Shown: in pieces, positions 7,110-17,713 of the stretch
Position numbering within the stretch: the stretch's first letter is position 1
How the letters are laid out: every line of letters begins with the position of its first letter
Source of the DNA: Calcarisporiella thermophila CBS 279.70
Lineage: Eukaryota > Fungi > Calcarisporiellomycota
NCBI RefSeq assembly: GCF_041956535.1
Contig: NW_027192191.1
Coordinates: forward strand, 1,629,688 to 1,693,687
Direction of reading: 5' to 3'
Length of the DNA stretch: 64,000 nucleotides
Program-made: the position numbers and the translations under genes
Notes under the pieces: model-generated
The model's database searches: none
Told to the model about the DNA's origin: nothing
Seen by the model: the letters and a program-made list of their open reading frames with translations, nothing else

Positions 7110-8480
7110 GAATATACAAGAGAGGGGAAGCTGGTGTGATTCTTTGGGCTTGATAAGAGAAATATATGCAAAGAATAAATCGGCTTTTTAACAGATTAAA
7201 GGCATTGAGTAAGATGAGAAAAGAGATTCACTTCCCTCCACCATATTCGGCTCAAATGCTATTTTAGCTGTGTGCCACGAGCTCCCATTCAGCGAGCCAA
7301 CCATATGGATTGACGTCAGAGTTATGATCGAGTCTGCAAAACTTTGCCCAATTTGCTCTCACCATCATCCTCAGTGAGCCAAATAAAATCTATTCCCTCA
7401 CGATATCGTGGCACATCCACCCTCCACACTAATAAAGGGATCTGAAATCTATGTATTAGCATGAATAGATTCTCCGCGAGATAACAGAGCCATTAGCCAT
7501 AGAATTTAGATGCTTGCAAAATATGCTACAGCAGACTGGATTAAAATCGATCCCTAATAGTGCTAGCTGCTGGGAAAAAATGTAGCTGGGCTGAGCAGCT
7601 CCAAATTTTGCAGCTGCTCACTTATGCATTAGCACAGGATACGAGCATTAGAATGTTTACTATTCATATACAACCGTTACATAGTAAAAAGTTAAATTAT
7701 TGGTTTTTGTATTCTTTTCTGTTGAAAAAGAATACATGTAATCTTTTGAAGCTCCAAAATTTCGGGTTCAATTTTTATTAAGATTGCATAAATCGTTCAG
7801 AACCCAGAATCCTCTGCTTCCGATACCAGCCTTCATTCAACTCTCGAAGAGGGTTAAATATATCTATTTCCATCGGCACTTTGGATTAAATGAGCTTCAG
7901 TTCCCTCCAGATAAAACATTAATCGAAATAAATATTCACTATATATTCGATAACTGCTATCAAGGCAAAGGTGATATACAAGATCGAAGCTCCGATTATG
8001 GCAACTTACGGGCTCTTGTAAGAGACAGTTTAGCCAGTTCAAGTTTGTCTTAAACTGGCGGATTTCCTTGAACCTTCTAATTCTATAAAACTGTTGCCCT
8101 AATAACATCTGCAATGAGTCGGATTCCTCTCGCAAAGTCAATTTATTTCTTCTGGACTGGCAACCCAATTCTCCAGATGGGATGATCTCAGAGTTATCCA
8201 TTGGTTTCCACAGAGAGTTTTTTGCATGGAGCCAGGTAGAGTATTAATAAATAAATTTGTCATAATTTATAGCAGCAGTAAAAACATAGCAGATAATAGC
8301 TATGGATAAATATACTTGTTTTTAAAAGTCATCCAGGGGTTTATACTGTTGCAAGTCATTTTCGGAACACTAGCGTGCTCTGTGTTGAATTAATATAGAA
8401 AGATTTAAATGAATAGGACACATGTGAAGGAGAAAGTTAACTACAAAAGGTATATGTATGGTAGAGAAAAAAAAAATACT

Positions 8481-13546: not shown

Positions 13547-14540
13547 ATGCCACCAAAACGAGTGCTGTGCAATTGTTCTGCGTGCATTTGTAAATGGGTG
13601 AGCAAATCAACAAAGTTGAATCATGAAAAATACTATGTGAAGAAGATAAGGACCAGAAATAACTGAAATTTCTACAGAAAATATTTAAAGGGAGAGATGG
13701 TATTGAGTATGCTTAGGATCTTTTCCGTTTAGTTTACACACATTTCTTAGTAATAATAATTTAGGTTATCATTTTTTAAAGCTTCGATATTTCAGTATCA
13801 TCTCCCCTCGCAAATACAATGGATATTAGTTATGAAGAGGCCGCAGAAGGGTCACCACATGCACTGAACTGTGAATATTTTGGCAAAGAAGATGGTTGCT
13901 ATATAAATGAGAGTGGAGGTCAAAACGATATAAGTCAATCCCAAAGCAGTGAAAGCGAAAGTATGCATTCTGAACCTGGGCAGGATTATGAGTTCAGCTA
14001 TTGCTTGGTATGAGTCCATTTTTAAAATTATGTTTTAAACATGTTATTTTATATAGACGAATTGGCATAATGTCTTATTAGAAGCATAGAACTCCTTGAG
14101 GTGAATGTTGAGTTTAGAGTTCTCAACGATGATTTTAGTATTATAAATAGAAGAGTAAGTACTGATACCGAGTCAACTTATTTAATTGAAAAAGAGTTAC
14201 AAGCACTAGTGGGAATCAAACTAGATTTGATAGATTGTTGTATCAATAGTTACATTGCCTACACTTGTGAATATACCCATCTTACCATTGTACAATTTGT
14301 ATAAAACATCGTTACAAAACAAGTTCTTCGCTTAGTAAAGAGCTACCACGAAAATTGTTTCCGTACTTTTCACTTGTTGACCGATTTTCGGGTTCAAATT
14401 AAAAACTCGGCGAGATTAAATGAATTGAAATAGTGATTATCACATGCTAATACTATTCGACTCAAACTTGTTAAAAAATTATATATACAACATATTAACC
14501 CTTAAAAATAGATATAGAGCACGATATGTCGGCCAATCTA
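13547..14540 (+). mobile_element. Degenerate CACTA/EnSpm-type (Tnp2-family) transposase relic
   Basis: N-terminal MPPKRVLCNCSAC...H zinc-binding-like motif; LVGIKLDLIDCCINSYIAYTCEY followed by frameshifted RYK...PRKLFPYFSLVDRF, typical of fungal Tnp2-family transposases; stops and frameshifts throughout. Confidence 0.7.
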
Positions 14541-15202
14541 GCTACAGCGCTTCCATTCAAGTTCAACTAGCATTCTTTCTGAAGCTGGATTCGTCCAAAA
14601 CCAGTAAAGCTTAAACTAGCATCAGAGTGGATGCTCGCTTTGGTGGTGATATTGTTTCATACTATACGGAGATTGACGTGAATGAATGGCCATTTCCCAG
14701 ACGGGAGCCCTCATTTGACAAGTATTCGTGTATCGGTTCAAAATGAAGAATATATAGATTCCTTTCAATTTGCTCGAGGTGATACCTTACCATATATACT
14801 TCTCCTTTGAGCTTTATGTGAAAATAGACTAGCATGCATTAGCTTATTTTTTGGTAAGCTGGCATTATAAATTAATAGGATAGAATTTACTGTACTATTG
14901 ACTTCTTTAAATCATCGGTTCGAAACAGCTAACTAATTAGGATCAATTTAAGATAATCTGTATTTATTTGTAGCCGAGCACTCGTGATATACTCTGAACT
15001 CTTCTTGATAATTTCCAACGATGTTGTTGCATCTTTTATTATGAAAGCATAATAAATGATATTCAGCAGGAGCTAGAAGTAGTAAATGTGAAACTCTACA
15101 TGACTATTTAAATGTCAATGTTTTCTTTGAGACACAAAGCCTAGGGAGACATCTTCTTTCGATATCGCTTCTTTTTTTATTTCGTATTCACGAAAGATAA
15201 CA

Positions 15203-15568
15203 ATGGAGGCTGTTAGAGAAGGATATTTTAGAGTGGGAAATTGGATCATTAAATACGATCTTGGACGTAAGGCTTTGAGAGATTCTTTCGGATCTCATGT
15301 GCAATTCTATAGAGATATTACTCGCATCCTAACTGAAGAGGGATACGTGCGAATTCAACATAGCGTGTATCGGCGCCAGCAAGAATGCCTACTCCTAGAG
15401 GTGCTATTTCCCCTTGGCCGAATTCGGAATTTACATTGGGTGAATGGCCTCTCACCTAACTGAGAGCCACATATCCTCAGCATCAGAGTCTCGGTTCAGA
15501 AAGAAGAATTTATGGATTTTACACTCTATATCCGTGGCGAGGACTTGCCCTATATCCCTCTCTTTTGA
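15203..15568 (+). pseudogene. vapD: VapD / Cas2-like endoribonuclease gene interrupted by one in-frame TGA (15461-15463)
   Basis: WIIKYDL...QFYRDITRILTEEGYVRIQHSVY...IRNLHWV. After the TGA the same frame continues EPHILSIRVSVQKEEFMDFTLYIRG. This parallels VapD AIAFDL...AYxDI...GFxRxQGSLY...W....VRDIRAFRIEQWSDFT. No introns. Confidence 0.72.
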
Positions 15569-16579
15569 TCATCGAGAGACTGAAGTGAGCTTAATTTACT
15601 TACGATTTGCTATTGGGCTTGTTACATGCGTGTCAGGAGGATAATAAACCATAATGTGTCGAATGTTAAAATCTTGAATGAACATGATGTTGTAATTAGA
15701 TTTTTTTATATACATATAAATGCATTCCTATAGAATAAATTATTTTAATGATTTCGCAGGCATTGATATTATCCCTGTAATATTCTGAAACCAAACCCAC
15801 TTCTAGCATTGCCATAATAAATAAAAATAAAAGAGCAATTTGATTGAAAATGAATTCCTGCTCATCAGTGATCATATAAAAATATTTCTAGTTCGCTTGA
15901 ATATTGTATGCTATTTGTATGCAAGAGAAAGTAATGATGTATTTATTTTCGCATTTAGCAAATGATAACAAGCATTGTATATACTGTATATAAACTACGA
16001 ATGATTTCTGCACTTATTGAAAGAATCTCAGCGGGGTTTCATATTTGAATCGTACTCAATTTCGTATTGATCCCATACGCCCTCTTCCACCTCTTCATTT
16101 ACTTCCAAAGTGACAGAATTCTCTGTCATCTTGACTGCAATTACCTTGACATAGGTATCGCCAATACTGACCTCACTGCCAACGAGTTGTGCTGCCTCGC
16201 TGAGCAAAGAAAGGAGCTCCTGCACGAATATCAAAATAAAACCCAACTAGTCATAACAATGAAATTCGACTTTATATATATTACACTCTTTGACTGCTTT
16301 CCAACCTGCTTCTGGAGTTTTTTTGGAATAATACGTTGGGCCGCTTTGGAAACTGAGGATATAATTTTCTGCAAAGAATTTAATTAGAGCGTAGGTAGCC
16401 ATAAACTTATAAAATCAATCGAATCTCTTACGTTTCTTGGTCGCTTTTCAACCCGCATTTGAGCCTGTTTCGGAATATGAGAGGCCTCTGAAGGACGTCC
16501 GGTGTGATGTTTCTTATGATTCTTAGGCCTAAAATGTATGGTGGCATCATTTCGCATTACATTTAACGGTTGCAACTGG

Positions 16580-16647
16580 TACATCTCTTCCAAATTGCGT
16601 TCACATTTATTACATCTCTTCCAAATTGCGTTCACATTTATTACATC
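16580..16647. repeat. Perfect 31-bp tandem duplication (2 copies plus 6 nt)
   Basis: tacatctcttccaaattgcgttcacatttat at 16580-16610 and 16611-16641, then tacatc. Confidence 0.9.
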
Positions 16648-17713
16648 GCTTACTTACGCGAGTGATGCTATCACTTTATCTGCTTCACGCCAATCAAGCA
16701 TATTACTAATATCGCTGCAATATTTCGCAACGAGTCTGATCCTCATTGCTTCCTCATTACTAGCCCTATTATTAAAATATGTTTTTTTTAGCTTTTCATG
16801 AATCATACCATCAACTATCTTACTTTATCGGATCGAAATTATTAGCCTCGCATTTTTCGGGATCGAGATATTCTTGCCCATATTTATTGGTAGTCAAGCA
16901 CTCGTAATACAAGCGACTTGCTTCTCGGCTTTCTCTAACAATGTTTTTGCATTCTATTTTATGAAAGTACAACAAATGATTTTAAGATATAAAACTAGAA
17001 TAATGGAAAACTATACAGGATCATCTAATGCCTACGATTTCTTATATGTTCGATAGCTAGAGAGGTATTTCCTTCTGACATCGCGTTATTTGGCGAAGAT
17101 TACAGGAGAAAACTTATGACAATTTCTCTCTTTAAATACTAATCAGCATATGTCATTATCTTAAACCTAGTTAGTATTTAATTTATCTAGATTGAATTTC
17201 ATGTTATTTGTAAATATTGTACTGTTTATTTTCATATTCATGAAACATAACAAAAACTATTAGAAAAAGCATTAGTTGCCTTATTACCATGGATAAATAG
17301 TAATACCCATATTATAAGGCTTGAACTTCAGTTCAGGTCTTAAATATTATAGATGCTGATTTTTATATATGAAGACGTGATATGCCTGCTATATTATTTT
17401 TTTTTAGCACGACACGAGTTTGTCTTGCCATCAGTTAGTGTGATTGAACAAATACTTTCCTAGATAGGTTTACATATACTCTGTGTGCAATGTAAAAGGT
17501 TGACGCATTTATTTTCCCATTTAATGATAACAAACATCGTATTCTCTGTATATAAACCATGAGTAAGTGCTACATTTTTTCGAAGAAGCTCAGTGCGGCT
17601 TCATTATGGAATCGTATTCGGTCTCGCAATTATCCCAGACGTCCTTTTTCACCTCCTCATTGACCTCCAAAATGATAAAGATCTGTCACATTAGTAAAAA
17701 TTACTTTGACATA

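Follow-up and report, generated by a model that had tools for sequence, protein, structure and literature searches.

The genome of the fungus Calcarisporiella thermophila CBS 279.70 contains an intronless frame that resembles the bacterial VapD ribonucleases and is interrupted by a single in-frame TGA. The question raised by this locus is whether the frame represents a bacterial gene that was recently brought into a fungal genome, a gene whose internal TGA is decoded, or a broken member of a resident gene family. Nucleases of the VapD/Cas2 fold, like type II toxin-antitoxin pairs, are generally considered prokaryotic. The window analyzed here is a stretch of 64,000 nucleotides (contig NW_027192191.1, positions 1,629,688 to 1,693,687 of the forward strand); positions given without a contig refer to this window, and its features are collected in Table 1. 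Most likely, the copy in the window is a dead paralogue of an old and unannotated fungal VapD/Cas2-fold family, which forms one half of a two-gene cassette together with a spliced partner gene (gene B).

Table 1. Features of the VapD-like locus and its surroundings (positions in the window)
Feature	Positions	Strand	Remarks
Older relic of a second VapD-like copy	14548..14807	+	5'-truncated, several stops, frameshift
Remnant of exon 2 of gene B with a single stop	14939..15031	-	what is left of the gene B that stood head-to-head with the VapD-like copy at 15203
Intronless VapD-like gene copy of 121 codons, followed by a TGA terminator	15203..15568	+	premature TGA at codon 87; catalytic Asp19 and Ser54 kept
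In-frame TGA at the site of the family-invariant Gly87	15461..15463	+	Gly codon (GGA, GGG or GGT) in every intact paralogue and in the Gigaspora genes
Intact partner gene B, six exons, 218 aa, GT..AG introns	16028..17081	-	tail-to-tail with the VapD-like copy; C-terminal exon predicted as SH3-like barrel
Exons of gene B (stop codon 16030-16028)	17081-17036, 16953-16824, 16765-16658, 16528-16432, 16368-16285, 16219-16031	-	from four-copy nucleotide alignment
Relic of another gene B exon 6	17593..17676	-	
MITE-like internal-deletion derivative (448 bp) of a TIR element (about 1.65 kb) that is dispersed in the genome	17708..18155	.	46-nt imperfect terminal inverted repeats

Translation of the frame confirmed the outline given in a preliminary description of the locus: the TGA at codon 87 is the sole internal stop, and there are no indels. 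The 86-aa piece before the stop matches the NCBIfam model for VapD (NF041506) with an E-value of 3.8e-6 (27 bits) and Pfam Cas2 with one of 0.014. Downstream of the stop, the remaining 34 aa gave no family match when searched alone, and are about 70% identical to the same segment of six intact paralogues in this genome (see below). The NCBIfam VapD model was matched by every VapD-like copy (E 4e-6 to 1e-2), and PADLOC Cas2 was matched weakly (E 7e-5 to 1e-3). All scores of the family lie under the curated cut-offs (16-27 versus 100 bits for NF041506, and 14-16.5 versus 23.8 bits for Pfam CRISPR_Cas2, PF09827), and the family is therefore, as judged from profiles and models, a distant VapD homologue that shares fold and catalytic residues, and not an equivalog.

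A family profile was built from the six intact copies and searched against the PDB, where it matched H. influenzae VapD (6zi0, 6zn8, 6zi1) at E 7e-6 to 3e-5. The alignment covers nearly the whole bacterial chain (profile positions 14-111 on chain residues 4-93) and extends past codon 87, where the fungal sequence is matched to the C-terminal strand of H. influenzae VapD and to its 'DFT' motif. A broader profile of 12 sequences reached E 1e-5 to 4e-3 with six VapD structures, which come from four bacterial genera, and no better than E 0.4 with Cas2 structures. The AF2 model of an intact paralogue has the topology beta1-alpha1-beta2-beta3-alpha2-beta4 at modest confidence (pLDDT 61.7, C-terminus below 50); when this model was compared to the PDB with Foldseek, the first seven ranks were taken by VapD structures (E 8e-5 to 8e-4), ahead of Cas2. 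Residues D19 (15257-15259) and S54 (15362-15364) align with the catalytic Asp and Ser of VapD; they are invariant in 12 family members and kept in the window copy. In characterized VapDs the catalytic residues are D7/S44 or D11/S46, and the active cleft lies between two subunits that are joined via their C-termini (PMC11980593). Hence, the assignment of the frame to the VapD/Cas2 fold, the continuation of the VapD resemblance beyond the TGA, and the retention of the key Asp and Ser, all of which had been proposed beforehand, were borne out by profile, model and fold searches, with scores below the curated cut-offs.

In comparison with bacterial VapD (6zi0/6zn8, VapXD; 9kan, C. jejuni VapWD; 3ui3, H. 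pylori HP0315; 5dyr, X. fastidiosa), the fungal family has in common the ferredoxin-like Cas2/VapD fold, a similar size (121 aa versus about 90-150), the aligned and invariant strand-1 Asp and Q-x-S Ser, the aligned C-terminal D-F-T strand, and a small partner gene alongside. The identity, however, is only 16-24%, and the fungal genes, unlike bacterial VapD, are multi-copy in nuclear genomes and carry a C-terminal extension (VRGGxxPxIP) and an N-terminal extension of approximately 13 residues; furthermore, the fungal partner is transcribed divergently from its own promoter, whereas the partner of bacterial VapD is located in an operon. CRISPR-associated Cas2 belongs to the same fold superfamily and gave weak profile matches (PF09827, E about 0.01), but VapD structures and models consistently outscore Cas2 (PDB profile E 1e-5 versus 0.4 or worse), and there is no Rfam match at 14400-17300.

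A six-frame search of the C. thermophila genome (28.2 Mb, 116 contigs) yielded 17 matches, corresponding to about 17 copies or fragments of the VapD-like gene. Six of these are intact, intronless frames of 121 codons (one each on C2, C18 and C110, and three on C34, e.g. C34:225194-225556) that are 56-64% identical to the window copy; the remaining copies carry stops or frameshifts or are truncated. A collection of 15 billion proteins contains none of the six intact copies, which are thus unannotated. Two public gene models splice around the damage in broken copies, i.e. P0003 (C107, locus 538-891) around a stop, and the Funneliformis model P0017 (locus L024:10001-11503) around a stop/frameshift; they are chimeric artefacts (79 aa and 133 aa).

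Between paralogues, synonymous sites are saturated (pS 0.66-0.83), at pN of 0.10-0.25 and dN/dS of 0.05-0.3 where computable; the six intact copies are under purifying selection. The pN of the window copy to the intact copies (0.215-0.247) falls within the range of the paralogues, which argues that this copy, too, was under purifying selection for most of its history and that the stop was a late event; in a simple simulation of neutral decay of an open frame, P was about 0.25 for one stop or none, a value that taken alone is also compatible with long neutral evolution.

The intact copies also provide the residue at the site of the internal TGA. Codon 87 is Gly in six of six intact paralogues and in both Gigaspora genes, and this Gly is invariant in the 12-member family alignment; the terminator at codon 122 is TGA in nine of nine full-length family members, the window copy and the Gigaspora genes included. 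With Gly at this site in the intact copies and in Gigaspora, and with all of them ending in TGA, the TGA at codon 87 is best read, from these alignments, as a real and ordinary nonsense mutation of a GGA Gly codon, which was one of the origins that the preliminary description had offered for it.

The other origins offered there, a read-through site or the relic of a donor that reads UGA as Trp (Mollicutes-type), would, like selenocysteine, lead to a full-length protein of 121 aa, and a frame that stays open and family-like past the TGA is what such decoding would leave. We assign to decoding in any of these forms a probability close to nil. UGA-as-Trp is ruled out, since TGA terminates all nine full-length members and is thus a stop codon in this family and genome, and since the aligned residue is Gly. 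Selenocysteine, already deemed unlikely beforehand, is rejected as well: genome-wide, no tRNA-Sec was predicted above the Rfam cut-off (best 43.2 versus 47 bits), neither a SECIS nor another Rfam element was found at 14400-17300, and the aligned residue is Gly and not Cys. Programmed read-through found no support; the first base 3' of the TGA is a G, which is not known as a context that favors read-through.

The TGA might also be an error of sequencing or assembly, or a polymorphism confined to the culture that was sequenced, in which case the gene would be an intact seventh functional paralogue; this is unlikely, though less so than decoding. A single base separates TGA from a Gly codon, the remaining frame is open and without indels, and the catalytic residues are kept; the pattern of replacements, however, differs on the two sides of the stop. 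At sites that are invariant in the other Calcarisporiella copies, nine private replacements were found in the window copy and zero to four in the intact copies. Four of those in the window copy precede the TGA (in 86 codons), all conservative and two of them representing the Gigaspora state, and four are located in the 34 codons after it, three of them radical (D100K, A101E, G113E; G113 is invariant in 12 of 12 aligned family members). Although the numbers are small, the radical replacements after the TGA fit a relaxed constraint on an untranslated tail. Against an error there is also the finding that the gene B paired head-to-head with this copy is by now a relic, and that broken copies are frequent in this family.

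A truncated product that is nevertheless functional, e.g. as a non-dimerizing decoy that tempers the intact VapD-like paralogues, appears more improbable still than an error. The bacterial VapW antitoxins are a precedent in that they are VapD homologues that lost the dimerization interface (PMC11980593), and the private changes within the first 86 codons of the window copy are conservative throughout. VapW, however, also lacks the catalytic residues, and its fold is still complete, the C-terminus being packed against the core of the same chain (PMC11980593); a ferredoxin-like fold minus its last strand is unlikely to be stable, and no second copy is truncated at the same place.

The window copy is thus most likely, from its sequence, a nonsense-inactivated paralogue, i.e. 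a pseudogene or at best the source of a truncated 86-aa product. Termination of translation at codon 87 would remove strand 4 onward, and with it the DFT motif and the C-terminal segment for dimerization and cleft formation; this segment is present in the intact paralogues, where it aligns up to VapD residue 93 and is modelled at low confidence. An 86-residue product without these parts is very probably inactive, and the window copy would most likely be dead, with an intact gene B left beside it.

With respect to distribution, the only species in which a word-based search detected the family were Gigaspora margarita, G. rosea and C. thermophila. When 1.84 billion representative proteins were searched exhaustively with a family HMM, 20 matches at E 1e-3 or better were obtained, 17 of them of the fungal type (E 4e-52 to 1e-8), which originate from Gigaspora, Funneliformis geosporum, the Calcarisporiella model, and short (soil) metagenome/SRA contigs; the other three (E 2.6e-4 to 7e-4) are longer, bacterial proteins. 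At least one of the latter, P0021 from a Lachnospiraceae MAG (336 aa), contains two tandem VapD-like repeats in one chain. P0021 and P0022 (253 aa) are the nearest bacterial matches, and their tandem VapD-like repeats are reminiscent of fused VapW-VapD. Scans with one short peptide pattern, which are not sensitive, gave no relative among 185,579 bacterial and archaeal genomes, and no confirmed relative among JGI metagenome contigs. In a maximum-likelihood tree, the fungal-type sequences are split from the bacterial domains on a long branch (support 89/88), and Gigaspora forms a clade with one metagenome protein (93/88); support is limited to these two nodes, with none among the Calcarisporiella copies.

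The preliminary description had also taken the gene as a recent horizontal acquisition, possibly mobilized by the neighboring CACTA/MITE DNA. A superfamily that is otherwise prokaryotic, an intronless gene, and a MITE at 2 kb distance, further copies of which adjoin three other VapD-like copies (C34:237586, C34:232824, C107:986), would fit a recent transfer from bacteria, e.g. from endobacteria, with subsequent spread by such MITE/CACTA-type DNA. We regard this as extremely improbable, and recent transfer from bacteria is not supported: the family is old and multi-copy, with the synonymous divergence between its paralogues saturated, and it is shared, together with a spliced partner gene, between Calcarisporiella and Glomeromycotina, i.e. 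two fungal phyla, whereas the bacterial matches are by far the weakest of the HMM search, the insensitive pattern scan of bacterial and archaeal genomes gave no relative, and the phylogeny with the nearest bacterial domains set the fungal-type sequences apart on a long branch. By the criterion of the preliminary description itself, i.e. fungal homologues that form an old clade, a recent acquisition is refuted. An ancient bacterial origin of the family is plausible, given that the superfamily is otherwise prokaryotic.

The locus had furthermore been described as a transposon island. Of this, one MITE-like element stood; the large ORFs on the flanks encode ordinary fungal proteins, namely a dynamin-like GTPase, a kinesin, a multicopper oxidase and the 75-kDa subunit of NADH dehydrogenase, and no transposase ORF of at least 180 aa is present between 9.3 and 20.3 kb. 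The element has 53 matches in the genome (full-length copies of about 1.65 kb e.g. at C7:774387-776052, C5:1085441-1087104 and C3:1159417-1161073), some of them near other VapD-like genes and most of them not. It adjoins the cassette but does not contain it, and the proposed mobilization of the gene by this element was not sustained.

Gene B was found by comparison of the flanks of VapD-like copies. Its coding sequence comprises 654 nt, with five introns. Approximately 12 copies are contained in the genome, nearly all of them beside VapD-like copies; the two genes are adjacent at C1, C2, C3, C32, C34 and C110, and also in G. margarita and G. rosea. In single units (C2, C3) and in the best-preserved unit of C34, the pair is divergent (head-to-head) with the starts roughly 550-700 bp apart; for the closest pairs, taken over C34, C2 and G. 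rosea, this distance is about 550-790 bp, and the pair in G. margarita is likewise divergent, with 2.2 kb between the starts. In arrays the units alternate, which results in tail-to-tail junctions too. In the window, the head-to-head gene B of the TGA-containing copy itself is decayed, and the intact gene B follows downstream, tail-to-tail. The genes are therefore not co-transcribed in one operon; they are divergent, and gene B is spliced, which is a eukaryotic layout. There are exceptions to the linkage: for some VapD-like copies the nearest few kb contain no gene B, and on C21 a gene B stands by itself.

The solitary gene B on C21 (C21:129012-130125) has one stop in exon 6, and its DNA is 82% identical to window positions 15960-17115; a 62-nt trace of a VapD-like 3' end (C21:130362-130423, compared to window 14796-14857) is located beside it. 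At the intact VapD-like copy of C18 (C18:7494-15298), a match to gene B exon 1 (8401-8445) lies about 545 bp from the start, and exons 2-6 (14448-15298) lie about 6 kb past exon 1, or about 6.6 kb from the VapD-like gene; this split reflects a rearrangement, unless intron 1 has received a large insertion. In the window, a perfect tandem duplication of 31 bp (16580-16641) is located within intron 3 of gene B, which duplication is absent from three aligned C34 copies that lack the surrounding stretch of the intron.

In G. margarita and G. rosea, an annotated and spliced homologue of gene B (183 aa and 180 aa) is located divergently upstream of the VapD-like gene. Exon 2 matches these homologues at E 3e-12 and 1e-11 (55% identity for G. 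margarita), and exon 6 at 43-45% identity and E about 1e-7 (G. margarita 43%, E 2e-7). Beside the broken copy of Funneliformis and the homologues P0005 and P0007 from metagenomes, gene B was not detected by single-exon tblastn, which does not speak for its absence, as contigs are short or the genes divergent there. That the VapD-like gene and gene B have stayed linked in two fungal phyla although their divergence is saturated speaks for a functional pair.

Gene B exons, searched singly, gave no match in Pfam, NCBIfam or PADLOC, and an alignment profile of exon 6 gave none in the PDB; the middle of the protein (exons 4-5) is very basic, as read from the translation. The C-terminal domain encoded by exon 6 is predicted as a helix and a small antiparallel SH3-like barrel (pLDDT 92.4). 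Foldseek with this model gave weak matches to SH3/Tudor/eIF5A-N-like domains (E 0.2 or worse), and a search of the ESM Atlas gave no usable match by features and only generic small barrels by shape. In a second structural alignment, Z-scores of up to 6.2 were reached for many SH3-like domains; VapX (6zn8_F, from the VapXD complex) superposed over 55 of 62 residues with an rmsd of 2.4 A and Z 5.5, at rank 31 and within Z 1 of many unrelated Tudor, KOW and EF-P domains, SH3-like folds being very common. A complex prediction for two VapD-like chains and the exon-6 domain gave a score of 0.04 (mark 0.34) without controls, and counts neither way.

VapX and VapY, the known antitoxins of VapD, are SH3 folds (PMC11980593). 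Gene B resembles them in that its C-terminal 63 aa are a predicted SH3-like barrel which superposes on VapX, as a non-specific fold match, and in that gene B directly adjoins the VapD-like gene, a linkage kept across phyla. It differs in that it is without sequence similarity to VapX/VapY, has 218 aa and five introns, and carries parts that VapX/VapY do not have, namely an N-terminal region with Cys residues and a long linker of basic character. The parallel between the SH3 folds of VapX/VapY and the barrel of gene B is thus suggestive of an antidote, and not specific.

Fungal spore killers and nematode peel-1/zeel-1 are eukaryotic toxin-antidote or killer elements, with which the cassette shares a tightly linked two-gene unit in multiple copies, rapid birth-and-death with many broken copies, and repeat-rich and contig-end sites; these killer elements, however, are without a VapD-fold component, and we know of no drive or killing phenotype for the fungal VapD-like family. 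Turnover by birth-and-death is evident from the tandem arrays of the gene pair. The largest of these (C34:225000-241882) contains at least eight VapD-like and five gene B copies or fragments and runs to the contig end; it includes an inverted VapD-like pair (232237-232738) and 3946 N bases, and may be subtelomeric.

On this basis, we tentatively propose a toxin-antidote function for the pair. The VapD-like protein would be a dimeric nuclease toxin that gene B neutralizes through its C-terminal SH3-like barrel, and the cassette would be the eukaryotic counterpart of a vapXD/vapYD-type toxin-antitoxin module. In a reading that goes further, and to which we give rather less than even odds, this putative pair would descend from the bacterial module and would have persisted in early-diverging, coenocytic fungi (Calcarisporiellomycota, Glomeromycotina) over hundreds of millions of years, either as a selfish addiction element or as a system for defense or nuclear conflict; the locus in the window, with its toxin gene dead and gene B intact, would then represent an 'orphan antidote' state.

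The arbuscular mycorrhizal fungi, among which the pair also occurs, are ecologically important. Our search of the literature found no report of a fungal VapD, and a recent census of VapD-like proteins describes no eukaryotic member (PMC11980593). New, then, are a multi-copy VapD-fold family under selection in fungal nuclear genomes, which was missed by gene callers, and the pairing of this VapD-like gene with a spliced, SH3-like partner in two fungal phyla. The window copy itself is of less importance, as a broken member of the family which illustrates birth-and-death turnover and rules out ideas of recoding; of interest beyond the pseudogene is the conserved VapD-like/gene B pair in Calcarisporiella and Glomeromycotina. 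Should this pair work as a toxin with its antidote, it would provide a rare example of a toxin-antitoxin module from bacteria that was domesticated, or has persisted, in eukaryotes.
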